A stretch of 64,000 bases of DNA from Macrostomum lignano (Eukaryota): the NCBI GenBank assembly GCA_002269645.1, contig NIVC01001545.1:1-64000 (forward strand), written 5' to 3'. A program made the position numbers and the translations under genes. Below the pieces are notes generated by a model. That model saw nothing but the letters and a program-made list of their open reading frames with translations, searched no databases and had not been told where the DNA came from. How positions within the stretch are numbered: the stretch's first letter is position 1; each line of letters begins with the position of its first letter. Positions 867 through 42,594 of this stretch are shown in pieces.

Positions 867-3800
867 GCCGAATCGAGCTCCGATCGTTTGGCCGCCTTCC
901 AACAGGAAGTGGAGGCTCTGGTGCGATTCAAAGACGAATACTTTGCCCAGCAACAGGAGCAGCAGCAACGGGGCGGTCGTTCAGCGGCAGTTGAGGCTCG
1001 GGTTGAGCAGATCGCCTCCCGATACGCCGATGTCGGCGCCTCAATCAGCGGCCCGGACAGTCGCTGCGCCCACGCCCTGTCTATGGGCAAACTCTACACT
1101 GCTTGGAGGAATTCGACCAGCGAGCCTTGGACAATTTGACTACGGCCGCGAAACTGAAGCCGGACCAGCCGGAGGCCTGGCGCTTGCTCGGAAACCTACT
1201 GGAAACGGCGGGACTATCAGTCCGCTTATAACTGCTTCAACAGCGCATTGCAGCACGGCAGGGATAGCGCTGTGCTGCGCAATCTGTCCATGGTGCTGCG
1301 AGCTCTGCCGTTTGCCAGTGCGGCAGATCGGCTGGCTAAGGTGAGGAGAGTCTGGCCAAGGCTAAGGAGGCCCTGCAGATGGATATTAAGGTGAGGCGCG
1401 AGATTCTGTAACTCCTGTCTGGGCTGTGTGCACCCTGTCACATTGTCACCACAACCGGCGAGAGGCACACATAGCGTGGGGATCAAGGACTACTTAGGAC
1501 GGGAAAATACGTTTCTCGGAAAACTTTAAGAGGCAGGCTTTTCAGAAAGGCAAGACATCGAAAGATGAACTCTGGGTCTGCCACCTTTAAAAGCAATAAC
1601 CATTTTTTGTGCTGAAAATGAAAGCCTTCTATCTTCGTTATCCTTGGCAGTCGTACGCACAGGCTCACATTTACACAGGAGTGTACAGGGGCCCTGACTT
1701 TATTATATCGTTAGGCATGTACACTTCACTTGTGCTTTGGGGGTTGGACCTCGAGGGCGCTAATTATTTAGCCCCAAATGAATGCCACTGCACTTGGAAT
1801 CGAGCCTGGGCCGCTGGCTCATCATTGGCTATACGGCTCCCCTTGTAGGTAAAAAAAGGTAAATCTGTAGGTTGGTAAGAATAAGAACCGGATAACAGGT
1901 GAATTATATAACAGCCCTCTGTCTCACTCACTCGAAACAATTTCCCTGAAATGAGTTACCTCTGAAACAGCAAGGGGTTTGTCTACGTATCGTGCCTTTG
2001 ATAGTAGTATATTCTGCATCTATAGATTTGATTAAATTCTCATTTAATAAATCTACTTGCAATGCCGCAGGACGGGCGCAGCTGGGCGGTGCTTGGCAAC
2101 GCCTACCTGAGCTGCTACTTCACCAAGGACCAGTCCAGCACCTCCATGCGCTTGGCCATGTCCGCCTACAGCAACGCTATGAAGGACCCGGTGGCCAGCA
2201 GCGACCCGGATCTGCACTACAACTCTGCCATGGCGCACGTCTACCTGGATCAGTACGAGCAGGCGCTCAGCGGATTTCGGATGGCCCACAGGCTTGACCC
2301 TAGTTGGCCGCAGGCTCAGGTAATCTCGGATGCGGCAGTGTTGAGATGCTGGGAATAAAAAACATTTCGGAAATAATTGGAAGTGGAAGTAATTGATTGC
2401 ACCTGCCCTACTCGGCCAGATGTGCAACCGGCAGCTCAGCCGCAGCTATTGCGCGGCGCATCCAAGGACGGGGGGGGTCGTCACACACACCCTCAATTAC
2501 CCGGCACAGCTAATGCTGGCACCCATTTTACAACTGGGTGAACTGAAGCAATGCCGTGTTTAAGTGTCGGCAGTGGGTCGGGATTCGAACCCCTGACCTT
2601 TCAGTCTTAATTCGGCACTGTAACCACAAGGCTACACCCCTAATTAATTAGTCTTTAATTCAAAGATTATGGAATAAGAAAAGAATGCCTTTGATGAGGC
2701 TATAGGATTCTGAAGATCTCAGAAGATCTGTAAGTCGGTATGATGCTGTGTAGTGATGAGGCTGGTGCTATTTGATAAAAACTGGCTCTTATCCTGCAGG
2801 AGAAAGTCACCCAGCTGCCTCGCATGCTGAGTAGCATCCAGGACATCATCGACAGTCGCGGCCGTTTGAAGCCTCGCGTCTATAAATCCATGATGGAAGG
2901 CTTCGCCCAGCGCCGGGTCAAGGATCTCGCCCCTACGCTGGTGGCGGCTACTCTGACAGCCGAGGCGAGAGCGTCGCCCTCGCCGAGGTTCGTCTGAGCC
3001 AGCTAAAAGTGGGAGCCAACCCTGAGACTGTGCTGCTGCTGCGAGTGATCGGGCTGCCCCGAGCTGATGACCAGGTAGGTACTTCCGGCGGCTGCTTTTA
3101 CTCGGTTTTCTTTCGCACTTCCGGTTTTTACTTTAAGTAGCAAATTTATAATTTAGGTTGGTGTTAGAAGTAACAATGTTACACTTCCGGGTTGTATATT
3201 TCAGTAGCTAATTGATACTTCCGGGTTGTATATTTCAGTAGCTAATTGATACTTCCGGGTTGTATATTTCAGTAGCTAATTGATACTTCCGGGTTGTATA
3301 TTTAAGTAGTTATTTAATACTTCCGGTTGGTATATTTTAGTAGTTAATTAATACTTCCGGTTGGTATATTTCAGTAGTTAATTAATACTTCCGGTTGGTA
3401 TATTTCAGTAGTTAATTAATACTTCCGGTTGGTATATTTTAGTAGTTAATTAATACTTCCGGTTGGTATATTTCAGTAGCTAATTAATACTTCCGGTTGG
3501 TATATTTTAGTAGTTAATTAATACTTCCGGTTGGTATATTTCAGTAGTTAATTAATACTTCCGGTTGGTATATTTCAGTAGGTAATTAATACTTCCGGTT
3601 GGTATATTTTAGTAGTTAATTAATACTTCCGGGTTGTATATTTAAGTAGTTATTTAATACTTCCGGTTGGTATATTTTAGTAGTTAATAATACTTCCGGT
3701 TGGTATATTTCAGTAGTTAATTAATACTTCCGGTTGGTATATTTCAGTAGTTAATTAATACTTCCGGTTGGTATATTTTAGTAGTTAATTAATACTTCCG

Positions 3801-4973
3801 GTTGGTATATTTTAGTAGTTAATTAATACTTCCGGTTGGTATATTTCAGTAGCTAATTAATACTTCCGGTTGGTATATTTTAGTAGTTAATTAATACTTC
3901 CGGTTGGTATATTTCAGTAGCTAATTAATACTTCCGGTTGGTATATTTAAGTAGTTAATTAATACTTCCGGTTGGTATATTTTAGTAGTTAATTAATACT
4001 TCCGGTTGGTATATTTTCAGTAGTTAATTAATACTTCCGGTTGGTATATTTCAGTAGTTAATTAATACTTCCGGTTGGTATATTTTAGTAGTTAATTAAT
4101 ACTTCCGGTTGGTATATTTTAGTAGTTAATTAATACTTCCGGTTGGTATATTTCAGTAGTTAATTAATACTTCCGGTTGGTATATTTCAGTAGTTAATTA
4201 ATACTTCCGGTTGGTATATTTCAGTAGTTAATTAATACTTCCGGTTGGTATATTTTAGTAGTTAATTAATACTTCCGGTTGGTATATTTCAGTAGTTAAT
4301 TAATACTTCCGGTTGGTATATTTTAGTAGCTAATTAATACTTCCGGTTGGTATATTTCAGTAGCTTATTAATACTTCCGGTTGGTATATTTAAGTAGTTA
4401 ATTAATACTTCCGGTTGGTATATTTCAGTAGTTAATTAATACTTCCGGTTGGTATATTTCAGTAGTTAATTAATACTTCCGGTTGGTATATTTCAGTAGT
4501 TAATTAATACTTCCGGTTGGTATATTTCAGTAGTTAATTAATACTTCCGGTTGGTATATTTCAGTAGTTAATTAATACTTTAGGTCGGTATATTCAACTA
4601 GTTAGTTGATAATTCGATAGCAGAAAACGTTTACAAAATTTTCGACCGTGTTTTGTTAAAATTTAAACTTTCAACCGCTCCATTAGGTTTGCCTCTCGTA
4701 TGCGCAATGGACTCAGACGAAGCCTGCTCACTCGTCAACATATTCAATATCTCGGCGGACCGAGGCCTCACAGTCGGCGACGCCATGGCGATCCCGGAGC
4801 CCACGCTAAGCAGGTTGGATTTCGCTGACAGCGAGACGGGCCGGAAGTTCCAGTTCCCAATAGTGCGGGTGCCCTCGCCAGACTGCCTGGTGGTGAATGG
4901 CAAGAAGGCCAAGGCCAGTGCATGGCGCAGCGCCACCGTGTTCTCATCCCAGGTGTCCAGCTCGTCCACCTGA
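867..4973 (+). CDS. TTC5: Tetratricopeptide repeat protein 5 (TTC5/STRAP) orthologue; first exon lies outside the window; four frameshifting indels as assembled
   Basis: Exons 867-1390, 2071-2319, 2800-3078, 4687-4973 with AG/GT boundaries. Peptides EAWRLLG-TYWKRRDYQSAYNCF, LRNLSMVLR, ALQMDIK|DGRSWAVLGNAYLS, SSDPDLHYN, LDPSWP, GDAMAIPEP and LVVNGK follow my recollection of human TTC5 (EAWNQLGEVYWKK, LQNLSMVLR, VQMDVHDGRSWYILGNSYLS, SSNPDLHLN, LDPAWP, GDSVAIPEP, LVVNGK). Frame changes near 1098, 1192, 1343 and 2930-2933. Confidence 0.9.
2395..2640 (-). mobile_element. tRNA-derived SINE, copy 1
   Basis: Minus strand has A-box-like TAGCCTTGTGG and B box GGTTCGAATCC. The body CATTGCTTCAGTTCACCCAGTTGTAAAATGGGT is shared with copies at ~8100, ~37260 and ~44225. 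Confidence 0.8.
3180..4580. repeat. 34-bp tandem satellite (~41 copies) in the last TTC5 intron
   Basis: Unit TAATACTTCCGGTTGGTATATTT[C/T]AGTAGTTAAT. Period 34 (ATACTTCCGG at 3317 and 3351). Confidence 0.97.
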
Positions 4974-5350: not shown

Positions 5351-6763
5351 AGCACAATCGCTTTATTCGATTGATAGTAAATTCCAGAAAACCAGTTTTT
5401 AATACTTGTCACCGCCCTATAAAATCTCTCGATAATTCCCAGTTAGCATGCTATTGCTGCATGCAAGCACTTGAGCCACTGGAATTTTTATTCCTTTTGC
5501 AGAAACTTGCAGAAATCTCAACTTTCCATTGTGTATTGCCTGATTAACTTTACTACGAGCTAGAACTTCGTCACCCACTTACTCTGCACTTTGTTGCTTA
5601 TGCTTATCTTTGTATCGTATTTTCTCGTTTTGCTTTTGCTCTAAGCTGAGCTTATACAATACATGCCTTGTGGCAGTCATGCTATTTTTGCTTTTCCATT
5701 TTCATATTTGTACCGTCCAGTTGTACGTAGAGCGTGAATGATTATCTTTGTTATTTGCTGTTTGCTGTCTTGTTTAATTTTGTTACTAACAGAGAAGTTA
5801 TCACTTGCCCTGTGTGATGATTTGCAACTCGCTTGACTTCCTGGTTTTTTCATGTGCGTCATCAAAAATTTGCTGTTCCTGAAAGCCAACATTGCATGCT
5901 GGGCATAGATGTTTAGCCTTATTTCATTACCTTTTGCTTGTATTTATTTAGGTAGTAAATAAAAGAGTTTGTTTCGATTTCTATTTGATGTGAATGCATT
6001 AGACTAGCGCACAAGTATTTTTTCATTTGGATCCTTTAGTAACCAGATTAGCTATTTGAAGCTAAAAGTTCAGTTAGTTTAGAAATCTACAAAGAAGTTA
6101 AACTAAGACATAATTTATAGCTACCTACCATTTGAAGCAGCCGTAAAATTGACTCTTCTCTTCTACTCGTCATGTTGACAACCCGTTATTGTAGCCAAAT
6201 ATACCCGGTAGATAATAAATAAGAACCATCTGGAAGCTTTCAGATCCTCAAAATACTATCTGAGTATTATTTTAGGTATTATGTCTTTTATTGGGTAAAA
6301 TTTATTTGTGTCTTACTAGTTTTTAAATCAAGGACCACTAGAAGTACATCAGGACGCTACAGTCAAAGATCGTATAATTTTTGGAGGCCGATTTCCGTAA
6401 AAAATGCACTGCAGAGATAGGAAAAAGCAACTCTTTTTTTATATAGTTGTGCAGTGAAAGTTTTGTTTTTACATTTTTATAAGCCCGAAGTTGTTAACAC
6501 TCACAAGTTGAATTACGAGCGTAGTTACATAAAATACACCAGAGCAACATGCTGTTCATGCTAAATTAAAAGAATGCTAATCTTCACTAATCCAGATCAA
6601 ATGCAATCATTGATTTTGTAATGAGCCTTCAAAAGAATTACACGATCTTTGACTGTAGCGTCCTGTTGTACTGCTAGTGGTCCTTGATTCAAATCAGAAC
6701 TTTACCGAAAGCGAACCCATCCAACCTGCTCTCTTTACAGAAGACTTGCATTTTTTGAGAAAC

Positions 6764-8032
6764 ATGGACGGTCAAAGCAGCAATGCGACTTCCGTCGGTA
6801 CAGAGCAACTCGAAACGGCGTCAACTTTGAGTGAACGTCAGCGAGACCAGATCCAGCATATTAGTCGGTATAGAGATGTGCTTCTTCTAAGACTTGAATC
6901 CATGCAGATAAACCAGGCTGGCCAGCCGCTCAGTCTTCGGCATTTAAGCAACGTAGTTGACTGGCCAGAGTATTACGTTCGAGTCCAGACTGGCTCTAGT
7001 AAAGTAGACGAGTTGATTGCAGATTTAGATAAGTTTTTCGGCGCCAGTCTGGCTCAGCTGAATCAGGTGCGCGATGAGGCCAGACAGAAGCTGGCAAGAT
7101 TTTTTCCGAGCTCAGTGGAAGCGGAGCAGCTTGAGTTGCGCATGTTCCAGCGTCTAAGATCTTGTCAGGAGGCCAACGAGTCGAATTTCGAAGAAATCTA
7201 TCAATTTGCAATGGTCGCTCTGTGCTCATTTCTGCACTGGCTGCAGCCGTCGCCTTGGGAGCGTCGGCAGCAACTTAGCAAACGAATGCGCTGGCTTCAC
7301 GAGCAGTACCAGGACACCATCAAGCAGCGCATTGACGCAGAGTATCGAAGCAATCCTTTCTATGCTCAGACGCTTCAGAGGTTGTGCCTTGTGTTAAAAG
7401 CGCCGGATTCTTTCTTGGAGAAGCGCTCATACTCCGAGGGCATTGTCGGATCGGTTGATCGTCTGGAAGCGTTTCTGCAAAACTTCTCCAATCAGACGGC
7501 TGAGCAGCGCCTTAAAGACCAGCTGATCTGTCGGATGCGGATTTTCCATCGGCAGCACGGAGATTATATCAGAAAGCGCATGGAAACTAGCAGTATTAGC
7601 CCGGTCGTCTTGGACAAGCTTCGTAAAATGCTCGCCGACTTTGAATCACCCGAGTCATTTTTCCTCCATTATAAAGACGATTTGGAAGCCATGCAAAAAA
7701 TGCTGGATCGATCCGAGTCCACTCTTGAAGCCGTATTGCCGGACAAATTGCATCCGAGCTTGCGCAAAGTCCGCACAGAGGCTCGCGCGAAATTGGCGCA
7801 ATTGTATCGGAGTCCCGCACTTGGTGACTACTATGTAGACCTGCTGCTCAAGCTGTACCCGAAACCAGAGAAGCTGGAGACTCACCTGTACAACCGGTGT
7901 CGAAGGGTTACATCGGACAGTGCCGAGCTGGTTTTATACGAGCGATACATGAAGAATCTGCTGATTGTGCTCAATGGTCGCTGGCATGAGAGCCTGTTAA
8001 GACCGCTTCTAATCGAAGAACGCGAGCTTTAG
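6764..8032 (+). CDS. MED15-derived protein A (~422 aa, single coding exon): central-domain / KIX / central / central / KIX modules, no polyQ, no MED15 C-terminal domain
   Basis: Uninterrupted ORF with ATG at 6764 after a CTCTTTACAG acceptor. Segments align by eye to the local MED15: VRTEARAKLAQLYRSPALG...KLETHLYNRC vs VETRRKLANLYRSPAPG...QLEDHVFRRC, and RMRIFHRQHGDYIRKRME...KLRKMLADFESPESF vs RMRQLHQQHSETVRARME...KLRQICNILETPENF. Confidence 0.8.
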   Translation: MDGQSSNATSVGTEQLETASTLSERQRDQIQHISRYRDVLLLRLESMQINQAGQPLSLRHLSNVVDWPEYYVRVQTGSSKVDELIADLDKFFGASLAQLNQVRDEARQKLARFFPSSVEAEQLELRMFQRLRSCQEANESNFEEIYQFAMVALCSFLHWLQPSPWERRQQLSKRMRWLHEQYQDTIKQRIDAEYRSNPFYAQTLQRLCLVLKAPDSFLEKRSYSEGIVGSVDRLEAFLQNFSNQTAEQRLKDQLICRMRIFHRQHGDYIRKRMETSSISPVVLDKLRKMLADFESPESFFLHYKDDLEAMQKMLDRSESTLEAVLPDKLHPSLRKVRTEARAKLAQLYRSPALGDYYVDLLLKLYPKPEKLETHLYNRCRRVTSDSAELVLYERYMKNLLIVLNGRWHESLLRPLLIEEREL

Positions 8033-8094
8033 TATCGTAGCTACGCTCGTAGTTTGCGCGACTTGGTAATTGGGTTTCTTAGGCCTAATGGAGA

Positions 8095-8331
8095 GATGTG
8101 CAACAGCTCAGGCGTAGGTTTAGTGTGACGCATCTGAAGGCTGTTTACGGCTGTTCAGTCAAAGGACCGGGATAGGGGGTCGCCGCACACACCCTCAATT
8201 ACCTCAGCTAATGCTGCTGGCACCCATTTTACAGCTGGGTTAAGTGTCATGCTTGTTTCAAGTCGGTCAAGAATCGAACCCCCGACTTTTTAGTCGTGAG
8301 TCCGACGTTCTAACCACTAGGCTACAACCCC
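8095..8331 (-). mobile_element. tRNA-derived SINE, copy 2
   Basis: Minus strand GTTGTAGCCTAGTGGTTAGAACGTCGGACTCACGACT...GGTTCGATTC, followed by the shared SINE body. Confidence 0.75.
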
Positions 8332-8334
8332 CAA

Positions 8335-8480
8335 TTGATAATATATATATATATTATTATTATTATTAATATTATTATAATATTAATAATATTAATATTA
8401 ATAATATTAATATTATTATTGATAATATATATATATACAGTTCAGGTATTATATATATTATATTATATATATATAATACC
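8335..8480. repeat. AT-only low-complexity tract ((TA)n/(TAT)n)
   Basis: Sequence is almost entirely A/T. The 8335-8595 ORF is an artefact of it. Confidence 0.85.
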
Positions 8481-10506: not shown

Positions 10507-11367
10507 CTTGTTCCTTCGGCAGCTGATGAGGACGGGTAGTTATGAGCCGAAGCAGGGATAAGCTTTCCGTTCAGAAAATTAGGATTCTATGTTATTCTTT
10601 ACGCCTAAAAACCATTAAAATGGCACGACTCAGCTCATTGGTTTTATGATTATATTTTATCATATTAGCTGACTGTGTACGTGTAACAGAGATGATAAAA
10701 TAGATTCAAAAAACCAAAGGTTCAAGCTGTGCCATGCATTTTTAATGACTTTTAGATACAGGAAATGCACGTAAAATCGAAAAACTATTTAGAATCCTAA
10801 TTTTCTGAGAGAAAGCTTTATAACTACAAATCGAGCTATAACAAAGGCACAACATATCAAAATATAAACATTGGGTCTGCCTCCTATCGAAAGCAAAAAA
10901 AATTGTGTTCAAAAATAAAAACTTCCTTTTTTCGTAGGGTATTTTTCGTCGAACAGTGGCCTTCAAAACGTTTTTCATAGATTTCGAGTGTTGCGTCCTT
11001 CTACTTTAGTATGGTCTACTTAACATGGTTGTTGCAGTCTCACGCAGAAACTGCGCGAGTTCAAACCCAATTGCGTCATTCCAAGGAAGCCTCTATGTTC
11101 CTTTCGCTCCTCGACACTCAAAATATAGATTTTTTTGGACTAAACTTGTACACACAAAGCCTTGAATGCCCTAGATATGTGCAAGAATGACATGACACAT
11201 CATTTATGTACATAGGTTACTCGGGCTCCACTTTATGAGCTCAAGTTGACAGGCCCTTTGGTTAAAGTAGTTCAGAAGCTGGATCCATTTATGCTAATTC
11301 ATATCGAAAGTTATCAAATTAAGTTTAAAAACAATCTTTCAGCGCTACCGCGGCTTCAGAGAGTAAA

Positions 11368-12425
11368 ATGGATAACCAAAACCGTGCCCTACGATACGTC
11401 ATTGTGCTGAGACTCGATGCAAGCTGGCTAATCTGTACCGCAGCCCTGCACCTGGAAACCAGGTAGCTCAGCTGCTGGACCGCTATCCCACCGCTGAACA
11501 ACTTGAAGATTCCATTTTCAGGCATTGTCAGGCTCAGCAGCGGAGTGGTGGCGTCAGCTTTGATCAGCACCAGTACCTGAGCCTTGTGTCCAAGGTGGAA
11601 GACGCGCTGACGGGTCGCCTGTCGCATCAGCGACAGCAGCTGCGTGCTGAGACACGACGCAAATTGGCTAATCTGTACCGCAGCCCCGCACAGGGACACC
11701 ATGTAACCGAGCTGCTGAACCGCTGTCCCACCGCTGAACAGCTAGAAGATTGCCTATTCAGGTATTGTCATTCTCGCCAACAAAATGGTGGTGTCAGCTT
11801 TGATAAGCAGAAGTACCTGCACGCTGTGTCCACTATGGAAGGCGTACTGACCGGTCGCCTGCCGCTTAAGCCACAACAGCTGCAGCAGATGCGTGTTGAG
11901 ACTCGGCGCAAATTTGCTAATCTGTACCGCAGCCCTGCACCTGGAAATCTGGTAGCCGATCTGCTGAGACAATATCCTACTGTTGAGCAGCTGGAGGATT
12001 TGGCTTTCAGGCGTAGTCAGGTGCAACAGCAGAGAAGTCGCGCCAGCTTTGATCAGCAGTACCTGAGCATTGTGTCCAAGCTGGAAGACTTACTGACAGG
12101 TCGCCTGCCGCCGGCGCAAGAGCAAAAGCTGGAGCAGATGCTGCAGCAACAGCAGCAGCGGGAGCAGCAGCTGCGTGTTGAGACTCGACGCAAGCTGGCT
12201 AATCTGTACCGCAGCCCTACACCTGGAAACCTGGTAGCTCAGCTGCTGAGCCGCTATCCCACCGCTGAACAACTTGAAGATTTCGTTTTCAGGCGTAGTC
12301 AGGCGCACCAGCGGAGTGGTGGCGCCAGCTTTGACCAGCAGTACCTGAGCCTTGTGTCCAACCTGGAAGGCATACTGACGGGTCGCATGCTAAGCCTGCT
12401 TCCATTCGATGAACGCGAGATTTAA
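11368..12425 (+). CDS. MED15-derived protein B: four tandem KIX-like repeats; frameshift between the homologous ATG (11368) and repeat 1, so possibly a pseudogene or initiated downstream
   Basis: One open frame 11376-12425 holds four copies of (V/A)ETRRKLANLYRSP.PG..V..LL.RYPT.EQLED..FR..Q.....G.SFD.Q.YLS.VS.LE..LTG, with E codons at 11409, 11649, 11898 and 12180. DNA is near-identical in places to the MED15 KIX at ~15125-15335. The 5' UTR acceptor context is homologous to that of MED15. Confidence 0.8.
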
Positions 12426-12544
12426 TATCGCATCTAGTTCGTGCCACATGTAACTAATTGTTTGTCCGATATATAAGCATCATTTAGTGTAACAATAAGT
12501 AATAATTTACTACAACTGGCCTAATAGGAAAACCCACTATGGCG

Positions 12545-12680
12545 TATCGGAAAGCTGCGTACGGCTGTTCAGTCAAAAGACTGGAGTTGCCACACGTTCC
12601 AAGTAGGTCGAGAAACGAACCCCCCCCCTACCTTTTAGTCGTGCTCCGATGCTCTAACCACTGGTTTTAATAGAACCCCC
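12545..12680 (-). mobile_element. tRNA-derived SINE, copy 3 (internally deleted)
   Basis: GCTGCGTACGGCTGTTCAGTCAAAAGACTGG and TTTTAGTCGTG.TCCGATGCTCTAACCACT match copy 2. Confidence 0.65.
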
Positions 12681-13551
12681 AATTTGTTATATATGAAGGA
12701 CCTGAATATTATTCGAATGCATATTTGAATCTAGTGATCTCGTAGGTCATTGTTTTAAAATATGATTTTAGTCGTATTGCACGCTAGTTGCTAAACGCGT
12801 CTGCCCAAAGTGTTATGTATGCTGACCAAAAAATGTACTCGTTGCCGTATTTATCCCTGCCTGCCGAAGCCTGCTGAAACAGGAAATTGAAATTGCGCAA
12901 AGAACCCAAAGTAGCTACTATCTAAAACAGTAACAACTTGCGCCCATATGCGGTCTATCAATGTGCATTTTTACTAATGGTGTAAAACCCGTTAAGAACG
13001 TTACCATGGCAAGAATCGCTAGAGTCATTGTAAACAACTCTCTAGTGAGTCTAGCGACTCTGGTGCAACTATTATGACTTTTTAACGACTCATGCGACGG
13101 AGAGGCGACTGTTGCGTCACAAGCGCGTCACGTGAGTTGCAGAATCGTGAAACAGTCGTTCTATTGTATTCATTTATCTGCTTTTATTAAGTACGAAACT
13201 GGCTGGCGCTCCGAATTTTTACATCAGTAACGCAAAACTGTCGCAGTCGGTAGTTTTTTTCAGTTTGCGCATTTCAACAATTAACTACTGCTCAAGTTTA
13301 ACAACTTTTTGTATGCAATTTTGCCGTTTTATCCAGAAAGTAGATACGAAAAGGACTGAATTTTTTTGTTCCATCTTTGGTAATTTTTATTTGTCTTTTC
13401 TTAATTTATTTCAAACCAACAGGAAAACACTACGAGACTGACTTGAAGCCAAAAGATACGTTATAATTCTCGACTCTTATTTTCGTTACCTCTTACTTTT
13501 ACGTTGACCATACACAATATTTCTATGGCTAACTGTGCCAGAATCATTTGA

Positions 13552-14249
13552 GGGGTGCTTTCACAACGTCGAAAAGTAAATTATTTCACAAGGTCGAAAC
13601 TTCACAAGGTCGAAATTTCACAACATAGAAAACTTTAGCAAGAGACTTCATAAGGTCGAAATTTCACAAGGTCGAAATTTCACAACATCGAAAACTCAAA
13701 TAGCAGCCACTTTCACAAGGTCGAAATTTCACAACATCGAAATATCTAGCAAGAGATTTCATAAGGTCGAAATTTCACAAGGTCGAAATTTCATAACATC
13801 GAAAACTCAAGTGCAGCCACTTTCACAAGGTCGAAACTTCATAAGCTCGAAATTTCACAAAGTCGAAAATTTTATATATCAAGAACCATACAGTAGTTTT
13901 CTACGTTGTGAAATTTCGACCTTATGAAATTTCGACCTTATGAAGTCTCTTGCTAAAATTTTCGATGTTGTGAAATTTCGACCTTGTGAAGTTTCGACCT
14001 TATGAAAGTGGCTGCTGTTTAACTTTTCTACGTTGTGAAATTTCGACCTTGTGAAATTTCGACCTTATGAAGTCCTTTGCTAAAGCTTTCGATGTTGTGA
14101 AATTTCGACCTTGTGAAGTTTCGACCTTGTGAAAGTGGCTGCTATTTGAGTTTTCGATGTTATGAAATTTCGACCTTGTGAAATTTCGACCTTGTGAAAG
14201 AAGGTGCTTTCGACGTTGTGAAATTTCGAGTTTGTGAAACCCCCCCCCC
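13552..14249. mobile_element. Foldback/MULE-like non-autonomous element: long inverted arms made of 17-bp subrepeats
   Basis: TTCACAAGGTCGAAATT arrays run forward (13560-13870) and reversed (13900-14240). G-run and C-run termini. Flanks ATCATTTGA (13543-13551) and ATCAGTTGA (14250-14258) form a 9-bp TSD with one mismatch. Confidence 0.8.
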
Positions 14250-15055
14250 ATCAGTTGAAGCGTGCATTCTTCACTTTGATTGGTAAAGTTGACTTTTAGC
14301 GACACAAATGGACACCTAATGCCAAACGAGCGTAAATCAAGAACAGCTGGCAACAGACCTCGGCAATCACACTAAGAGAGCCAACCAGCTAGGGTTCCTC
14401 ACTGCCGCAAAATCTAGGCAGTAGCACAAACACGTGCTGGACTATTGACCCCTGTACTGACTCACTGGGGCGGAGCGGGGGTAGTGTGAAAAGGCGCGGT
14501 TGGAGGATTTCAGCTGGGGGGTAAGAGCCAACAAATGAGCCTTGGTTTTAAAAATGCAATAAAATGCTTCTGTTTAACTTGCTACTGAACTGAAAGTAGT
14601 TTACATGCAAATGTGCTGAGTGGCCCATCTAGTTATTCTAGTATCTGGGTTTTTTGTAAGTTGAATGCACGCTCTATTTGATTCTGGCACAGAATTATTG
14701 CCGAATGGTTAATGTTTTGTCTATGGGCTTGCCAATGTCCAACAAGCGTCAATTTAGTTCATAGCTGAGACGCTGACATTCCAGCGTTACTCCACAGCCC
14801 ACAGATGGTTGCGAGTAGGCAAGAGCTGTCAGCCTTGCTACCTTAAGCAAACGTATTTCGGATTAAATTCACGGCACTTAAGCACAAATAGGCTGCAAAA
14901 AGCTATATTAAATACTTAATTATTTATAGGGTATAAAATACTTTTGTAAGCCTAATTTGTAGTGTTCCGTAAACTCAATCTCAATTCATATAAATTCATA
15001 CCGTGAGCTATGAAATCACCATCGCCATCTTTCAGAGCTACCGGCTTCAGAAAAA

Positions 15056-17907
15056 ATGGAGCCGAACCAAAACTATGGCCAACGATACCCCATCATGCAG
15101 CAACAGCAGCTGCAGCAGCTGCGTGTTGAGACTCGACGCAAGCTGGCTAATCTGTACCGCAGCCCTGCACCTGGAAACCAGGTAGCCCAGCTGCTAAACC
15201 GCTATCCCACCGCTGATCAACTGGAGGATCACGTTTTCAGGCGTTGTCAGGCTCACCAGCAAGGTGGTGGCGTCAGCTTTGACCAGCAGTACCTGAGCAT
15301 TGTGTCCAAGCTGGAGGACGCACTGACGGGTCGCCTGCCGCAGCCGCAACAGCCGCAGCAGATGATGCAGCAGCAGCAGCCGCCGCCTACTCAAGTGATG
15401 CAACAGCAATTGCAGCAGCAGCAGCAGCAGCAGATGATGCAACAGCAGCCTCCGCCGCAACCTCAGCCTCAGGTGATTCGGCCTCAAATGCCGACTGATC
15501 CGCTGGTGTCGCTTTCAAACATGGTCGGCGGTGGCCCGGTTGGCGTCAGCAACATCGTTGTCGGTGGTGCCCGGATGGGGCAGCAGAGTGTGCCGTTGCA
15601 GCCTCGCATGGGGCCCAGGCCTGTTCCGCAGCAGCAGCAACAGCCGCCTCCCAACCAGCTTCCACCATTGAATGAGCGTCAGCAGATTCAAGTGCAGCGC
15701 ATGCGGCAGCTCCACCAGCAGCACAGCGAGACGGTCAGAGCCCGGATGGAAAATTCGCACGGCAATGCGGCCAATTTTGAGAAGCTGCGCCAGATTTGCA
15801 ACATTCTCGAGACGCCTGAAAATTTTGTACGCAACCAGCGGGATCCGGATAAAATTGACAACACAATCAGGCAGTTGGAGAGCATTCTGCGGCCCAATGC
15901 GCCTCACGCTCAGGCACTGCAGCAGCAGCACATGCTACAACAACAGAGACTTCAGCAGCAGCAGCAGCAGCAGCAGCAAATGCAACAGCAGCAACTGCAG
16001 CACCAGCAGCTACAGCAGCAGCAACAACTCCAGCAACAGCAGCAGCAACAACTGCAACAACAGCAATTGCAGCAACAGCAATTGCAACTGCAGCAGCAAC
16101 AGCAATTTCAGCAGCAGAAATTGCAACAGCACCAGATGATGTCGCAGATGCAGCAACAACAACAGCAGCAGCAGCAATCGCCAATGCCCATGTCCAGTGC
16201 AGCTCCTGACAGCGTCGCTGCTTCGTCGCATGACATTCCTCCGGCACCCCGTCGACTTGGTGAAACACTTCTTAAAGTACGTAAAAGTACGCCAACCAAT
16301 CACCTCTTAGTTGACGCTATAAATTCGCTGTCAAGGTTCACCTTTACTACAAAAGTGTTCGGCCTCCAATACCTTTTTTTAGAGCAAAACATCATCAACT
16401 TGGTGTTTTGAAAGCCGTTCCCTATCTGTCCGTTGCCCAACGATTCAAAATCACTAACAAGTTTTCTCCAGCCAACGATTGAAAGAAGCAACCAGAATCC
16501 ACGGAACATTCTGTCACGATAGATTGCATCCGCCGTCAGTTGCATCCCCACCGGAGTGGAGAGGGGGGCATGTCCCCCGGCCCCAGTAAAAGCTGTGGGG
16601 GGGGACATGCCAGTGCTTTGTCCCACCCGCCTCACCTTGTAACCCGCTACGGAAATCAATCATTTCTCCTTTGGGCGCCAAAATGTAGCGCCTTTGGCGC
16701 CAAAAAGAGTGCCTGCGGCGCCAAAATGGGTGTCTGCATGCGGTGCCAAAATGAGTGCCTGTCTGCGGCGCCAAAATGAGTGCCTGTCTGCGGCGCCAAA
16801 ATAAGTGCCTGTCTGCGGCGCCAAAATGAGTGCCTGTCTGCGGCGCCAAAATAAGTGCCTGTCTGCGGCGCCAAAATGAGTGCCTGTCTGCGGCGCCAAA
16901 ATAAGTGCCTGTCTGCGGCGCCAAAATGAGTGCCTTCTGCGGCGCCGAAATGAGTGCCTTCTGCGGCGCCGAAATGATCGCTAGAAACTCCGATTCCTAA
17001 AAATGTAGGAATTTAGTCATGTAGAATTCTTGGCTTTGTCCCCCTCCCTTCTAAGAAGTCCATTGGCGGCGCCCCTGTCTGCCGTCACAAGTAAAGATTT
17101 TTACCAACAAAATCATCTCTTCCACTCCTCCAGGAAATCGAATCTGTTCTCAAAAGTCCCGTCTGCGATTCTGTCTGGTCTCGCTTCGCCTCTGAGGTCC
17201 GTTCGGCGAATCAGGGCATTGTCCCGCCTCGCGACACTCTGTTCATCCCCGTCTCCGTTGACTCGGCAGCTGTTGGCGCCTCCGACGCGCCGCCGGTGAC
17301 TCCCGCGCCGGCTCCAGATCAGCCGTTGCGCTCCGAGCTCGCCGACCTGCCGCCCTACTGGCGCGTCCGAGTCTTGACCAGCTCGGCCGGCCCTGTCGAT
17401 CCGGACAGCAGCAAAGACGACGCCGCCGACAATCAGGAAGACGAGTCGGCGGATGCTGCCGACGCTTCTAAAGTTGAGGGCAGCGACGCGGTAACCTCTA
17501 GACGGGTTCGTCTGCGCGCCGTCTACACGAACCGGCACTTGATGCCCGACGGCGCCGCGCCGGAGCTGCTGATCACCCTGGCGCCCGGCTACCCGACTGT
17601 CCGGTCCGCCACCGCGCGACTTCTGCCGCCGCGCCTATCGGCAGCTGATAGCGCCGACAATGGCAGCGACAAGAGCAGCAGCTGCAGTCGGAGCGCCGAG
17701 CTGACCGCGGACGCCGCCGAACTGCGCCGGCTGATCCAGACCGAGTGGCGATCGGCCTACGCGGAGTACAAGCGGGTCTATCGGGACAGGAACAGCCTCA
17801 CGGGAGTGCTGGACGCCTATCACAAAGCCCTGCTGGTGGCCTACGATAGCTGGGCCCCCGGCAGTGAGTTCAGCCTGGCCCAGGTGCGAGCCTTTATGCG
17901 GCGCTGA
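15056..17907 (+). CDS. MED15: Mediator subunit 15 (ARC105/MDT-15), ~664 aa
   Basis: Exons 15056-16276 and 17134-17907 (AAA|GTACGT ... CTCCAG|GAA, phase 0, frame continuous). KIX LEDHVFRRC..QQYLSIVSKL (human MESHVFLKAK..DEYLSLVARL). Q/P-rich region. Central KLRQICNILETP (KMKSLLDILTDP). PolyQ. C-terminal ESVLKSPV, PLRSELADL, APELLITLAPGYP and SLTGVLDAY (ANIRSPV, VLQGEVARL, VPPLELSVPADYP, SVTALLNTW). Human motifs are from memory. Confidence 0.9.
16720..16975. repeat. 25-bp minisatellite in the MED15 intron
   Basis: Unit GCGCCAAAAT[G/A]AGTGCCTGTCTGCG. Period 25 (16746 and 16771). About 10 copies. Confidence 0.9.
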
Positions 17908-18520: not shown

Positions 18521-19099
18521 GCAACCAATACGATAGTCCCGTAATGCAGCCCCACAATAAAATCCTGGATACATCCCTGAATAGTAATTGTTTTAACATT
18601 TATCCTTTGTTTTCTCTCTTAGCTTATATTACTTAAAGTACTTCCTAAGCTGTTCTGTCTACTTAGATCGGCCTTGGTTTAGGTCAACTTAGATATTTGT
18701 TTTTTAATAATTAAAACATTAATTATGACGCCGCCATCTGTTGAGAGAACCTGCTACTGGAAGGTTAAAGAAACAATGGAACTAAAGATCGCACTGTTTA
18801 CTCGGAATTAGACGAAGTGCAGACGCTAAAAACCAAGGATTTTTGTTTTTTTATTACGGCTCGTACTTAAAAATCACTTGAAGTAAAGATTGATAATCAT
18901 AACGTCAGCTAGTTTAATGAGAAAAATACGAGTATAGGAGCAGCACTGCATTACATTTTTAGCACAGAGTGACAATTTCAAAGTGCAAAGCATTAGAAAA
19001 CGCGGTAAAGAGAAGTTTTGAGAGTTCGATTTACTCGTGGAATATTTATGAAAACCAAGCAACAGAGTCTCGAGATATAAGCATAGGGTTTCTGCCAAC

Positions 19100-19415
19100 T
19101 TATTAGATCCGGGAAATTTCGGGGAGATTCTATTGACAATAAAGTTTCGACAATAACTTCATTTCCTGTCTGACAGGCGCACATCAGCGGCGTGATTCCT
19201 ACCTTATCCGGCTGATCTGGCTTTGCGCCTTTCTTTAACAACGCGCTAAAAACGTCCTGATGGCCCTCAAGAGCAGCCATGTGCAAGCCGGTCCTCCCGT
19301 CGGCGCTGCAGATGAAGTTCGGGTCGCCGCCGCTAAGAAGGTACTTGTGCAGCGCATTCATATCTCCGGCTTGAACCGAGGCAATGAATAGTTTATCTGG
19401 AGCTTTGTCTGCCAT
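19100..19415 (-). pseudogene. Truncated paralogue of the ankyrin-repeat gene N-terminus
   Basis: GRTGLHMAALEGHQDVFSALL...DKVGITPLMCACQTGNE closely parallels GRTGLHMAALSGHQDVFNTLL...DKQGITPLMCASQKGNE in the 34122 gene. Similarity collapses after ~95 codons. Confidence 0.75.
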
Positions 19416-25504: not shown

Positions 25505-27420
25505 AACTAGAATTGCTTGATAGTTTGAAATCGAATTTGCTTGAAGTAGAATTTGAAAAGTAATAACTGGTACAGGTAATCGAATTTGCTTGAAGTAGAA
25601 TTTGAAAAGTAATAACTGGTACAGGTAATCGAATTTGCTTGAAGTAGAACTTGAAAAGTAATAACTGGTACAGGTAATCGAATTTGCTTGAAGTAGAATT
25701 TGAAAAGTAATAACTGGTACAGGTAATCGAATTTGCTTGAAGTAGAATTTGAAAAGTAATAACTGGTACAGGTAATCGAATTTGCTTGAAGTAGAATTTG
25801 AAAAGTAATAACTGGTACAGGTAATCGAATTTGCTTGAAGTAGAATTTGAAAAGTAATAACTGGTACAGGTAATCGAATTTGCTTGAAGTAGAATTTGAA
25901 AAGTAATAACTGGTACAGGTAATCGAATTTGCTTGAAGTAGAACTTGAAAAGTAATAACTGGTACAGGTAATCGAATTTGCTTGAAGTAGAACTTGAAAA
26001 GTAATAACTGGTACAGGTAATCGAATTTGCTTGAAGTAGAATTTGAAAAGTAATAACTGGTACAGGTAATCGAATTTGCTTGAAGTAGAATTTGAAAAGT
26101 AATAACTGGTACAGGTAATCGAATTTGCTTGAAGTAGAACTTGAAAAGTAATAACTGGTACAGGTAATCGAATTTGCTTGAAGTAGAATTTGAAAAGTAA
26201 TAACTGGTACAGGTAATCGAATTTGCTTGAAGTAGAATTTGAAAAGTAATAACTGGTACAGGTAATCGAATTTGCTTGAAGTAGAACTTGAAAAGTAATA
26301 ACTGGTACAGGTAATCGAATTTGCTTGAAGTAGAATTTGAAAAGTAATAACTGGTACAGGTAATCGAATTTGCTTGAAGTAGAATTTGAAAAGTAATAAC
26401 TGGTACAGGTAATCGAATTTGCTTGAAGTAGAACTTGAAAAGTAATAACTGGTACAGGTAATCGAATTTGCTTGAAGTAGAACTTGAAAAGTAATAACTG
26501 GTACAGGTAATCGAATTTGCTTGAAGTAGAACTTGAAAAGTAATAACTGGTACAGGTAATCGAATTTGCTTGAAGTAGAATTTGAAAAGTAATAACTGGT
26601 ACAGGTAATCGAATTTGCTTGAAGTAGAATTTGAAAAGTAATAACTGGTACAGGTAATCGAATTTGCTTGAAGTAGAATTTGAAAAGTAATAACTGGTAC
26701 AGGTAATCGAATTTGCTTGAAGTAGAATTTGAAAAGTAATAACTGGTACAGGTAATCGAATTTGCTTGAAGTAGAATTTGAAAAGTAATAACTGGTACAG
26801 GTAATCGAATTTGCTTGAAGTAGAATTTGAAAAGTAATAACTGGTACAGGTAATCGAATTTGCTTGAAGTAGAATTTGAAAAGTAATAACTGGTACAGGT
26901 AATCGAATTTGCTTGAAGTAGAATTTGAAAAGTAATAACTGGTACAGGTAATCGAATTTGCTTGAAGTAGAATTTGAAAAGTAATAACTGGTACAGGTAA
27001 TCGAATTTGCTTGAAGTAGAATTTGAAAAGTAATAACTGGTACAGGTAATCGAATTTGCTTGAAGTAGAACTTGAAAAGTAATAACTGGTACAGGTAATC
27101 GAATTTGCTTGAAGTAGAACTTGAAAAGTAATAACTGGTACAGGTAATCGAATTTGCTTGAAGTAGAATTTGAAAAGTAATAACTGGTACAGGTAATCGA
27201 ATTTGCTTGAAGTAGAATTTGAAAAGTAATAACTGGTACAGGTAATCGAATTTGCTTGAAGTAGAACTTGAAAAGTAATAACTGGTACAGGTAATCGAAT
27301 TTGCTTGAAGTAGAATTTGAAAAGTAATAACTGGTACAGGTAATCGAATTTGCTTGAAGTAGAATTTGAAAAGTAATAACTGGTACAGGTAATCGAAGCT
27401 TGAAGTAGTATTTGAAACGC
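25505..27420. repeat. 49-bp tandem satellite (~38 copies), highly homogeneous
   Basis: Unit AGGTAATCGAATTTGCTTGAAGTAGAA[T/C]TTGAAAAGTAATAACTGGTAC. Essentially one variable site. Confidence 0.98.
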
Positions 27421-28083: not shown

Positions 28084-31000
28084 TCAGTCATTGCTCATCA
28101 GAAGCAGAGCAGGAGCAGTCAATGGTGCTGCAGCTGGTCCACTTTCACTGATTGAGTCGGCATCGTCTCCATTTTCGGCGCGCTCGTTTCGGCCTCCGGC
28201 CTCGGTAGTCGTTCCAGATTGCACAGACTGGGCTGGTTCAATCGGTATTTCGTCCAGCACTGTGTATTGACTGCATTGGTCGAAGTGTAACAAACGATTT
28301 ATTTTATTTTTACTAATCAACTGGGTTGTCACTATTACGAATAGAAGCATTTAAATGTAAGCAATAGGAACTGCATATCTGGATCTTAAATGCCTTTTCT
28401 TAAGTATTCGCAAAATCGTCATTGCCTGCTCAAATTTGAAAAAAATCTCTTCTACTGGTTTGTCGAGAATAGAAGATGACTGGTCAAAGAGCTGATAAAA
28501 CCCAGCACCTTAGATCTACTGCATCTACTGCATTCCGTAATAAATATTATATTGTTCACCGACCTCAGTGAGAACTAAGGCCACACTTGTATACTGCATT
28601 TGTTGCACTTTTTAAGGCATTTGTTTGAAACCGGTCTTTAAGAAAACCGAAGTCAGTTGAATGCATTTTGCCTTGAATGCCTTGAAACAGATCGGGAAAA
28701 ACTAAAGCCGAACCTACCGTAAATGGGATCGGTTCTTGATGGCTGTGAGACTAGCCTTACTCAGGAAAAATCAAAGAAGCAACAGTTAAAACCACATGTT
28801 CATGTATACGATAGCTATGAGTACTCTCGTAGCTATCCCTAACCCCCAATAAAATCAATCAATAAAAATTGAGCGCCTACGTTCGGGGAAATTCCGCTTC
28901 GCTCGTCATCCGGTTGCACTCGGACGATTCGGATTCTGGCGGCCCTGAAGGCCCTGGCGGACCTAGCGACCCTTGCGGATGAGAGACGTCAGCTCGTCGA
29001 GGTTCTGGTGTGTCATGTTCCATTTTGACGTCTCTAACTGCCAGTTCGGGTCTGAATAGTTTAAAAAAATTCCATTGAAAAAATTGACACGGAAAAACTA
29101 ATAGTAGTACATACAGATATATTTATAATACAGCTGTGTACTCGAAAACAAAACTCCCCACCTCTCTCCTGTGGCAGCTGGCAGCTGAACTTCCAGCCGT
29201 CGCTCGACCTCCTGACGCACCTCGGCGCTCGCCCAGACGGCCAGCTCTCCCAGCCGGTCTCTGCTACTGCCTTCGCCGATTCCCGCCTTCTCAGCCAGCA
29301 GCTTGACGCAGTCCAGGTTGTTGCGGTGCACTGCGATCATCAGAGGAGTCGCACCGCTGCTGTCCACAACATCGAGTCGAGCTCCGTGTTGCGAGAGGGC
29401 ATCGAGGATGTCAGATCGACCAGCGATGGCTGCCAGGTGAGCTGCGGTTGATCCTTGCTGGTTGGGCTTGCTTGGGTCGCACTGACCGCTGGTCAGCAGG
29501 AAGTCCGCAATGTCTTTGAAACCCTGACGGCAGGCGTACATCAGTCCCGTGTTTCCTTGAACATCTTCTTCATCAAGCGGAAGATTTTGCTCATTGACAA
29601 ATCTTAGTATTTTTAAGTGTCCTGTTCCGTTCAAGCCAATGCAAGCAACGTGTACAATGCTTCTCTGTCTTTGGTTTGTATGTCTTGAATCGCAACCAAA
29701 TTCGATGAGCATCTTCATCGCATCCAGATGGCCGTTCAAGGCACAGTCAAACAGCGGTGTGTCGCCTTCCGCGTCAGGAATGTCAAGCTGAGCACCCTGC
29801 TCTTTCAAATATACCAAAATATGCTTGAGATCTCTGGCTGCCGCTTTTTGAGCCGGTGTGTTTCCGTGATTGTTGGCAGCATTCAAACTATTTAGGTTTG
29901 TGAATCGTTTAACTAAATGGAAGTTTCCAGAACTGACAGCGGCTCTGAGAGATGTCTCACCTGTAGCAGGATCGATTGCAGATAGTTCAACGCCTCGCTT
30001 CTCCACCCAGTCTACCATGTGCTGGTTTCCTAGCGCCAGTGCCTGGTGCACGATGCACTCCGGAAGGGAAGGCTCAAGCTCATACAGTAGGTTCGAAATA
30101 TTCTCGTGCCCGCTTAGCACTGCACATCGAATCGGAGTAAATCCCGAAGCGTTTTCTTGGGTTAGAATTTGCACTGCGTCTCTATTTGCATTCCTAATGT
30201 GCTGCAGGACGTGCAGGTTGCCATGAATGGCTGCAAAGTGAGCACAGTTCATGCCGTCTTTACTTTTGGTAGCTGCAGAGAACCCCTTCTGCTCAAGAAA
30301 CTTGAACACCTCCAGGTTTCCCTTGATCGCTGCCAGGTGTAGAGGTGAGCGGGTCTCTGGTTCAGCAGTGTCCGGTTGACAGGAGCTGGGACAGTTGTCG
30401 CAGACCCACTTCACCAGCGCCAGCTTGTTTTCGATTGTAGCGACGTGCAAAACGGAATGTTGCTTGTTGTTTCTGAGGTCCGTGCGGCATCCGAGCTGGA
30501 GCAGCACTCTCGCCATGTCCAGCCTGCCTCTCATGATGGCCAAATGAAGCGCGGTGTCTCCGTCGGCATCCATGAAATCTGCAATCTCTTTCGCTAACTC
30601 ACGGTTGAATTTGATTAACTCTTTGAGCAAGTTTGCGTCACCAAGAAAAATTATGTGATGCAATAGAGTCATTTCTTTTTGCTTTTTCTTGCCGTCGAAG
30701 CCAAAGGCCACCAGATACTTGAAGTGATCTAGGTTTCCAGCCTTGAATATTGCCTTGAAAGTAACATTTTGAAGAACCACGTCCTTGTCGAACTGACCGT
30801 TTTGCTCTTGAAGAATATGAGTAAGAACGGTTTCGTTCAGAGCTACAGCAACAGACATAGGCGTGTCTCCTGTCGCACTATAGACATTTGGATTTGCACC
30901 TTTTCGCAACAGAAGTTGCACAGCGCCGATCTTCCTGTGTCTGATTGCGGTGAACATCGGAGTCTCTCCATTGCTGTCTGTGAGGTTTGGAGCAGCACCG

Positions 31001-34000: not shown

Positions 34001-34122
34001 CCTTGATCATCTGAGACGTTTGGGTCAAGATTTTGCGTCAGATACTTGTATACAGTCCGATTGTCTCCTGCCTTAACTGAAGCAAAGAATATGTCTCTAG
34101 CGGCTGTTGGTGCAGCTGCCAT
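28084..34122 (-). CDS. Large ankyrin-repeat protein, ~1772 aa
   Basis: Exons (minus) 34122-29162, 29051-28881 and 28270-28084. Both introns are GT-AG and phase 2, giving a continuous frame. Roughly 40 ANK motifs by eye (G.TPLH.A, D..G.TAL), followed by a low-complexity tail. Confidence 0.88.
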
Positions 34123-34749
34123 GACTCTGCTGTTGAAAGTTCTAGCAGCAAAATTGCTAAGATTACAAGCCGACTGCAGTCGGTTCAAACAATCGTCTTT
34201 AAACTGCCCTCCTATGGAATTTAAAGCGCTGCATTAAATAAAATACTACAAGCTATGAAGGCAAGCAATGTGCACAGTATTGTTCTGCTGTACAGATTAA
34301 ATTGAAGCACTGTATTCTAGGTGGAGTAATAGATGAACATTCACAAGTACAATGAGCCCAGCCAACCAGGGTAAAAATGGAAGTTCAGCTTTTTGATGCC
34401 TGTACAAGAGTACAGAGAGGGCTGTACGGAAAGCAGAGTTGCAGCACTCTATCTCTTGTTTCTACCACTGCGCACAGACAGAAACACAGCTATGGAAAGC
34501 TATGAGCTAAATTATGTTCAAATGTTAGACAGAAAGATAAAAGCAATTGTATAATTGAAAACTGCACTGAAATGCGCGGCAGTTAGCGTCAAGGTTAGAG
34601 AATGAATATAAACAGAAGGTGTAAAAATGACGAAAGCATTATCGCCGAGTGATAATTAGCAAGCACGGTGTAATGCAGTAGCACATGCAGAAACTCTAAC
34701 TGTAGTGGACGGAAACACTTATATATAAGAGATGCGGCTTAAAAATTCG

Positions 34750-38159: not shown

Positions 38160-38345
38160 GAGAGGGTGAAGCTGACTGAGGAGAGGGTGAAGCTGACTGA
38201 GGAGAGGGTGAAGCTGACTGAGGAGAGGGTGAAGCTGACTGAGGAGAGGGTGAAGCTGACTGAGGAGAGGGTGAAGCTGACTGAGGAGAGGGTGAAGCTG
38301 ACTGAGGAGAGGGTGAGGCTGACTGAGGAGAGGGTAAAGCTGACT
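38160..38345. repeat. 21-bp minisatellite (~8.5 copies)
   Basis: Unit GAGGAGAGGGTGAAGCTGACT. Confidence 0.95.

Positions 38346-42563: not shown

Positions 42564-42594
<31 letters not shown>

Follow-up and report, generated by a model that had tools for sequence, protein, structure and literature searches.

A gene of KIX-like and central-like units, probably derived from a divergent MED15, in the flatworm Macrostomum lignano

The window analysed here is the first 64 kb (64,000 nucleotides) of contig NIVC01001545.1 in the Mlig_3_7 assembly of Macrostomum lignano, and our subject is an open reading frame (ORF) on its plus strand, at 6764-8032. Four genes follow one another on that strand: a TTC5-like tetratricopeptide repeat (TPR) gene, the ORF, a derived gene with four tandem KIX-like units (the KIX array), and a 670-amino-acid (aa) gene that we identify below as MED15. 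An earlier note on this DNA, made from the letters alone, had described an intact single-exon frame of 422 codons, and this is borne out: the ORF runs from the ATG at 6764 to a stop codon at 8030-8032 without an internal stop, whereas the other five frames of the same 1269 nucleotides (nt) carry 12-23 stops each. Its product is a 49-kDa protein with two KIX-like and three central-like units, and another copy of the locus encodes a protein of 98% identity to it, PAA59366.1 ('hypothetical protein BOX15_Mlig026396g4'). The record of the locus on its own contig (L003) is 100% identical to window 1835-22425, and the whole locus is found twice more in the assembly, in L001 (NIVC01002272.1) and L002 (NIVC01001542.1), at 96-98% identity to the window and ~98-99.9% to each other. 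The presence of three copies fits the known redundancy of the M. lignano genome, which is neopolyploid (PMC5730564).

BLASTP of the ORF against the neighbouring frame at 15056-16408, the first exon of MED15, returned five matches without overlap, ordered central, KIX, central, central, KIX (Table 1), and HMMER agrees with this arrangement, which the earlier note had read by eye, the first KIX-like match being weak. With 1000 shuffled ORFs as control, the best shuffle reached 5.3 bits with a hidden Markov model (HMM) of the MED15 central segment and 9.3 bits with an HMM built from the five KIX-like units outside the ORF; approximately 2-3 of the 1000 shuffles reach the 5.9 bits scored by k1. 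As a sequence assignment, the match of four of the five segments (c1, c2, c3 and k2) to pieces of MED15 is solid, and k1 is graded as a probable KIX-like unit, and a degenerate one, because its score is low and 14 residues are missing between helices 1 and 2. Unit c1 has itself lost about 7 residues at the start of the RMRQLH helix. In the KIX-like and central alignments alike, the positions kept across all units are helix-core residues shared with MED15. The ORF ends 15 residues past k2 and, as had also been claimed, is devoid of polyglutamine (polyQ) and of the MED15 C-terminal domain: its longest glutamine (Q) run is 2 and its Q fraction 0.07, against 9 and 0.29 in MED15 exon 1, and the MED15 C-terminal exon finds no credible match in the ORF, the best (E=0.028) being to a low-complexity acidic insert. 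We also considered the ORF as extra exons of TTC5 or MED15, which is ruled out by its own acceptor, ATG and stop codon and by a separate single-exon gene model.

The parent of these pieces has gene calls on three contigs, of 668-672 aa, and is too divergent for Pfam, PDB and pairwise searches. Pfam finds Med15_N at E=0.18 only, short of its thresholds; PDB sequence searches with exon 1 and with the C-terminus gave nothing relevant; human MED15 had no significant BLASTP match among the flatworm proteins; and the gene was not among the matches of the two large protein searches described below. Our reference set comprised 122 true MED15 proteins, of which 22-30 supplied profiles; the human sequence used matches a Pan paniscus MED15 at 100% identity, and all full-length true MED15s carry Pfam Med15_N, Med15_M and Med15_C. 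In a profile Smith-Waterman test with 300 composition-preserving shuffles, the N-terminal region of the neighbour scored z=7.7 against the KIX profile, and its central and C-terminal parts together scored z=5.2 in a single colinear alignment, which begins where Med15_M begins, takes in 'PLLQEIESVLKSPV' (human 'PLLDAVLANIRSPV') and extends to 'APGYP' (human 'PADYP'). The central segment alone aligned to the start of Med15_M with z=3.2, and cross-controls gave z of ~0.1-0.2. The hhalign comparison of the flatworm KIX-like units with the true KIX alignment was significant over KIX helices 2-3 (P=0.0046), pairing 'LEDHVF…YLSIVSKL' with 'MESHVF…YLSLVARL'; in local mode the central and C-terminal parts were not significant, the greedy alignment being nonetheless colinear. 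KIX, Q-rich linker, central region and C-terminal domain thus occur in the order expected of MED15. Because of the two z-scores (7.7 and 5.2), and because the architecture is that of Pfam Med15_N, Med15_M and Med15_C, the neighbour is, on this comparison, a very divergent MED15. Its first exon ends near 16280-16335 and its last begins near 17134-17197, boundaries that cannot be reconciled with the annotated length. The central units of the ORF correspond to the first part of Pfam Med15_M, which we take to be roughly residues 540-612 in human numbering. The human stretch that matches them is not visible in the mammalian Mediator structure, in which MED27 and MED29 enclose residues 620-652, the stretch 654-674 follows MED14, and a folded domain of residues 678-787 lies between MED23 and MED24 (PMC7921410). 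The ORF contains no counterpart of human 620-652, of the MED14-binding stretch or of the folded C-terminal domain (Med15_C).

Table 1. Positions in the window of the ORF, its units and its plus-strand neighbours, with the matches that define them (CDS, coding sequence).
Feature	Position (strand)	Residues	Matches and remarks
TTC5-like TPR gene	to ~5000 (+)		
Splice-acceptor motif TTACAG	6735..6740 (+)		23 nt upstream of ATG; sequence CTCTTTACAG/AAGAC
ORF	6764..8032 (+)		
c1, central-like unit 1	6827..7036 (+)	22-91	HMMER 18.8 bits, E=9e-8; BLASTP aa 24-92, E=4e-5
k1, degenerate KIX-like unit (probable)	7058..7237 (+)	99-158	HMM 5.9 bits (aa 118-146); BLASTP aa 103-146, E=0.011 to MED15; E=0.012-0.024 to KIX array
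c2, central-like unit 2	7253..7480 (+)	164-239	HMMER 30.5 bits, E=2e-11; BLASTP aa 166-238, E=7e-9
c3, central-like unit 3	7493..7756 (+)	244-331	HMMER 26.8 bits (aa 255-321), E=2.9e-10; BLASTP aa 255-330, E=3e-9
k2, well-preserved KIX-like unit	7760..7984 (+)	333-407	HMM 40.0 bits (aa 333-382), E=1.5e-14; BLASTP aa 337-380, E=1e-9, 52% identity over 44 aa
C-terminal tail and stop	7985..8032 (+)		ends …WHESLLRPLLIEEREL and stop; common to KIX array gene
KIX array gene	11343..12425 (+)		L001 16517-17621; four tandem KIX-like units and ORF-type tail
KIX array units	11406-11621, 11634-11864, 11880-12119, 12177-12389		
MED15, divergent parent gene	15036..17907 (+)		annotated CDS 15038-17907, 670 aa; gene call on the window's own contig
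MED15 KIX-like region	~15122-15340		
MED15 central region	~15674-15895		
MED15 polyQ tracts			
MED15 C-terminal exon	ends 17907		

The ORF is preceded by the motif TTACAG, and the spliced-leader acceptor of M. lignano is [T/C]TNCAG (PMC8629364), so the motif is likely, on sequence, to be a trans-splice site. In L001, the RNA-seq-derived coding sequence of PAA59366.1 begins on the first base after TTACAG. GenBank gene models of Mlig_3_7 have RNA-seq assemblies as their only source, and these were cut at spliced-leader and poly(A) sites that had been mapped experimentally (PMC5730564); such a model exists for the L001 copy, which indicates that the ORF is transcribed. MED15 and the KIX array share the arrangement, each with TTTCAG 20-25 nt ahead of its ATG. 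The 5' leader differs in length between copies, with six T residues in the window (6741-6763) and seven in L001 (10001-10024) and L002. The spliced leader of M. lignano ends in ATG (PMC8629364); joined to the seven-T leader of L001 and L002 this ATG would lengthen the ORF in frame by 9 residues, and joined to the six-T leader of the window it would open a 6-codon upstream frame with TGA just before the main ATG. No AATAAA occurs on the plus strand within ~890 nt past the ORF stop, and neither Mlig026396 nor Mlig028310, nor an expression pattern for the ORF, was found in the searchable text of papers or in supplements of M. lignano papers.

The ORF is old relative to the divergence of the locus copies. 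Pairs of its internal repeats, and repeats compared with MED15, differ at a proportion of 0.70-0.85 of synonymous sites (pS, saturated) and 0.44-0.60 of nonsynonymous sites (pN), against a pS of 0.029 between locus copies, and its frame is still open. It is intact in all three assembled copies, with 0 stops and 0 indels. Between the window and L001 there are 17 substitutions and 0 indels in its 1269 nt, compared with 30 substitutions and 9 indels in 1061 nt of flanking sequence (indel p=0.004), so that divergence is 1.3% in the coding sequence and 2.8% in the flanks (Fisher p=0.012). Eight of the 17 substitutions are synonymous and nine nonsynonymous, giving a ratio of nonsynonymous to synonymous rates (dN/dS) of 0.32 (binomial p=0.02); the same comparison for MED15 exon 1 gives 0.07. 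The signs of a pseudogene (stops, frameshifts and a neutral substitution pattern) are absent, and the view that a strongly diverged and yet stop-free frame suggests selection has held. We conclude that the ORF is, with good probability, a maintained coding gene.

The KIX array is a sister gene, the units of which are 68-81% identical to the KIX-like region of MED15. It is intact in L001 (PAA59367.1, 367 aa); in the window, its frame is shifted by a 22-nt deletion just after the ATG at 11368, flanked by GTGC microhomology, such that reading from the ATG meets a stop after 32 codons; GenBank lists a partial product of 196 aa only. In its 5' leader and acceptor it is homologous to the 5' end of MED15, and its 3' end is related to that of the ORF. 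The ORF tail …WHESLLRPLLIEEREL and stop aligns with …MLSLLPFDEREI and stop in the array, and positions 7992-8043 and 12385-12436 are 79% identical in DNA (E=9e-7) through the stop codon into the 3' untranslated region (UTR); hence the homology of the two genes covers tail, stop codon and the proximal 3' UTR. The same dispersed repeat comes after each gene. Synonymous divergence (dS) from the MED15 KIX region is 0.16-0.36 for the array and saturated for the ORF, from which the array would be either much younger than the ORF or homogenised with MED15; the combination of a shared old 3' end with a young-looking array is perhaps due to gene conversion with MED15. Pfam found nothing meaningful in the KIX array or in MED15 exon 1, and a precomputed match of the array to PF26249 is a faint hit to 4HB_RdRP3_N and irrelevant. 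The dispersed repeat, of ~230 nt, is present at 8103-8340, 2461-2648, 12540-12684, 37260-37483 (minus strand) and 44227-44495 in copies 72-84% identical, and sits ~70-115 nt past the stop codon in the ORF and the array alike; the copy that follows the ORF has a tRNA-like appearance, which neither ARAGORN nor Rfam confirmed.

Tandem arrays lie around and inside the genes at 8-796, 3183-4615, 13584-14200 and 16713-16977. They include a 24-nt unit repeated 33 times; a 34-nt unit repeated 42 times (95% matches) in the TTC5-like gene region, the copy number of which varies between locus copies; units of 62-127 nt that separate the KIX array from MED15; and a 25-nt unit repeated 10.7 times in the MED15 intron. 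Inverted repeats at 6322-6382 and 6633-6693, of 61 nt each, 92% complementary and 250 nt apart, resemble a miniature inverted-repeat transposable element and end ~45 nt upstream of the ORF splice acceptor. Further along the window, a 49-nt satellite at 25529-27417 (38.6 copies, 99% identity) produces spurious frames of ~650 codons in three minus-strand frames. A very long unbroken ankyrin-repeat ORF of 1696 aa follows at 29098-34188 (minus strand), and a shorter one at 18993-19415 (minus strand) resembles it at the N-terminus ('…KAGD…LHMAAL.GHQDVF..LL..GA.P…'); judged by eye, the two look like another duplicated family in the window. A 20-nt unit is repeated 49 times at 34751-35736, and 38000-44000 is a block of satellites with strong GC skew (0.37-0.49), including a 40/81-nt unit (54/27 copies) at 39100-41271 and (TGGA) repeated 314 times at 41720-42979. 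A non-LTR (long terminal repeat) retrotransposon occupies 46102-51441 (minus strand; G+C 0.58-0.62), with a 967-aa reverse-transcriptase ORF (YADD motif), an endonuclease-like ORF and ORF1, and beside it on the opposite strand, at 52027-54237 (plus strand), is a second, A+T-rich reverse-transcriptase ORF. Both element assignments were made by eye from translations.

It is very probable that the ORF was born from KIX-like and central pieces of MED15, and its junctions retain traces of how this may have happened. The k1-to-c2 junction reads '…FLHWLQPSPWERRQQLS…' and corresponds to MED15 'LTGRLPQP', about 110 Q/P-rich residues and 'PPLNERQQIQ', with the linker collapsed; the c3-to-k2 junction reads '…LEAVLPDKLHPSLRKVRTEARAKL…' and corresponds to 'LESILRPNAPHA', where the central region ends, fused to 'LQQLRVETRRKL', where KIX starts. 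The former preserves the native order of KIX and central region, and c1-to-k1 and c3-to-k2 are the products expected of tandem duplication, which argues for amplification of a cassette rather than shuffling. Hence, of the description 'domain-shuffled' given in the earlier note, the derivation from rearranged MED15 pieces stands, and shuffling is not the simplest reading; on the evidence of the junctions, tandem amplification of the native KIX-Q-central cassette appears to explain the order better. The 5' exon of MED15, with KIX, Q-rich linker, central helices and further Q-rich sequence, would have undergone tandem amplification. The Q-coding repeats on either side of the cassette are the probable sites of unequal exchange, a plausible mechanism given that both junction breakpoints in MED15 fall in such repeats. 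The Q-rich linkers would then have collapsed and some units been lost, such that K-C-K-C-K-C-K without its first and third K became C-K-C-C-K, the end product being central-KIX-central-central-KIX with a short new tail.

Many activators use MED15 as their main docking subunit, binding its KIX domain and, in yeast, further activator-binding domains as well; normally MED15 acts only within the Mediator tail. The parts that anchor it there are missing from the ORF, and from this we infer a role away from Mediator: lacking these anchors, the protein would not replace MED15 in the Mediator tail, would bind the partners of the MED15 KIX and central regions, and would titrate them from Mediator-bound MED15 or bridge them independently of Mediator. 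The explanation that we favour overall, at a probability of about 0.4, is a coding gene that was born from MED15 in the Macrostomum lineage and acts off Mediator. That its protein serves specifically as an off-Mediator competitor or adaptor, close to the free multivalent activator binder (decoy or adaptor) of the earlier note, is suggested tentatively, from its unit content and the parts that it lacks. More doubtful still is the wider proposal that the ORF and the KIX array form a small, undescribed M. lignano family of MED15 derivatives independent of Mediator; their trans-spliced mRNAs would come from the MED15 locus, and their products would act as natural squelchers or adaptors, tuning MED15-dependent transcription (for example, of lipid, stress or stem-cell programmes) in a flatworm that regenerates.

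Other explanations give the same units a different part. The protein might be an accessory of Mediator, its triplicated central unit contacting Mediator or MED15 and adding KIX-like docking sites to Mediator instead of competing with it; three of the five units are central-like, each scores above k1, and in MED15 the central region, conserved across animals as the first part of Med15_M, lies immediately ahead of the MED27/29-binding helices and is missing from the resolved part of the mammalian structure (PMC7921410). We regard this as unlikely, since the ORF has none of the segments known to contact MED27/29, MED14, MED23 and MED24. It is also unlikely that MED15 ancestry is historical only and that the ORF encodes a neofunctionalised helical protein outside transcription, such as a fast-evolving reproductive or structural one. 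Its extreme divergence from the parent (28-35% identity, with synonymous saturation), relaxed constraint (0.32 against 0.07), new C-terminal tail and lack of any homologue found outside M. lignano would all suit such a protein; the residues kept in every unit, however, are the helix-core positions shared with MED15, k2 is still predicted to have a KIX-like helix arrangement, and the adjoining gene derived from KIX only suggests selection on a KIX-related function at this locus.

Least probable of all, in our estimation, is a transcribed relic without protein function, the frame of which is open by chance or through recent duplication. The unannotated state of the window copy, a dN/dS not far from neutrality over 17 changes and the frameshifted copy of the KIX array, which demonstrates that decay does happen here, are compatible with a relic; but the gene is old, its repeats and its distance to the parent being saturated, and it has nonetheless kept 422 codons open, with all three copies intact, no indels against nine in the flanks, and an excess of synonymous changes (p=0.02).

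A number of observations weigh against the favoured explanation of an off-Mediator gene born from MED15. The window's own copy of the ORF is without a gene model in GenBank, and constraint is much weaker than on MED15, in an estimate based on just 17 substitutions. The N-terminal region of Med15_M could itself mediate contact with Mediator. With 14 residues missing, k1 may not fold as a KIX domain. Pfam and PDB sequence searches with the ORF and the KIX-like units find nothing, no Pfam family, Med15_N and Med15_M included, reaching E<=0.1 with the ORF; against a profile of 22 true MED15 KIX domains, k1 and k2 score z=1.0 and 1.7, which is not significant; and HMMs of the flatworm units perform no better on the 122 true MED15s than on reversed sequences. 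Against canonical Med15_M profiles c1, c2 and c3 score z=1.2, 0.2 and 2.4, c3 (6 of 300 shuffles) being the sole unit of the ORF that hints at direct similarity. Judged by these comparisons, the KIX-like units lie far from canonical KIX, and the assignment of ORF units to KIX and Med15_M is transitive, by way of the flatworm MED15. The whole-ORF AlphaFold2 model is all-helical, with 19 helices, and of low confidence (predicted local distance difference test, pLDDT, 54), and Foldseek on it was uninformative. A PDB search with a profile of seven KIX-like units likewise gave nothing relevant, and a PDB match to ETV6 ('YRSP..G..LL') was discarded as a short chance motif. Modelled from the seven-unit alignment, k2 reached a pLDDT of 84 and a predicted template modelling (TM) score of 0.68, with helices at 6-24, 31-39, 43-57 and 60-78 (long, short and two long). 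Foldseek of this model against 350,542 PDB chains returned no match with E<1; among its 29 weak matches, KIX entries of CBP (4i9o, 6dmx_D, 1kdx and 6dmx_B) took ranks 2, 3, 6 and 8, and 4i9o and 1kdx, at TM 0.49-0.52 over 87-88 columns, had the best TM-scores in the list, the 6dmx chains having ~0.35. The model thus gives weak but specific support to a KIX-like fold for k2. Of the 'KIX' label in the earlier note, then, homology through the flatworm MED15 and this weak fold match remain, and a direct match to canonical MED15 profiles does not.

If the favoured explanation is true, a maintained decoy made of MED15 modules without Mediator anchors would be a natural genetic test of 'squelching' (regulation through a co-activator decoy) in an animal, and would offer a handle on the conserved but structurally unseen N-terminal region of Med15_M, the very unit that was amplified three-fold. 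The locus presents a clear route to a new gene, in which a cassette flanked by Q-coding repeats would be amplified, its linkers collapse, and a new tail and 3' end be gained. All that is known of the gene so far comes from a single species, a neopolyploid in which duplication is rampant.

Word-indexed and exhaustive HMMER searches of 1.84 billion representative proteins found M. lignano proteins only, namely the KIX array and the ORF product of the other locus copy. Since other Macrostomum data may lie outside the libraries searched, 'restricted to M. lignano' describes the databases; the saturated divergence predicts orthologues of the ORF in related species. As the earlier note supposed, no family in Pfam, the PDB or the literature matches the ORF, and we regard it as a new, lineage-restricted variant of the MED15 family (MED15/ARC105/MDT-15/Gal11; Pfam Med15_N PF09606, Med15_M PF21538, Med15_C PF21539). 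Homology with the adjacent M. lignano MED15 extends over all five units of the ORF, two KIX-like and three central-like; the ORF differs from MED15 in that these units are multiplied and reordered and in that polyQ, the MED27/29-binding helices and Med15_C are missing; it is too divergent for any MED15 Pfam model, and is a derivative rather than an orthologue. The KIX array has the same parent, strand, locus and kind of acceptor, and a homologous tail, stop codon and proximal 3' UTR, but holds KIX-like units only. The sole related precedent that we found is in Candida albicans, where the TLO family consists of amplified Med2 Mediator-tail genes and yields a 'free' non-Mediator pool of protein, for which competition with DNA-bound factors for targets has been proposed (PMC5065183). 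There too, a gene for a subunit of the Mediator tail was amplified in one lineage, although the Tlo proteins are not related in sequence to the flatworm ORF and are whole-gene duplicates that keep their Mediator-interaction domain, whereas the ORF is a rearranged partial copy without the anchoring domain. Plant KIX8 and KIX9 offer another parallel, being small proteins with KIX outside CBP/p300 or Mediator that serve as adaptors, to TOPLESS, in the KIX-PPD repressor complex; they belong to an unrelated lineage, however, and combine a single canonical KIX with other motifs, in place of the Med15_M-like units of the flatworm ORF.

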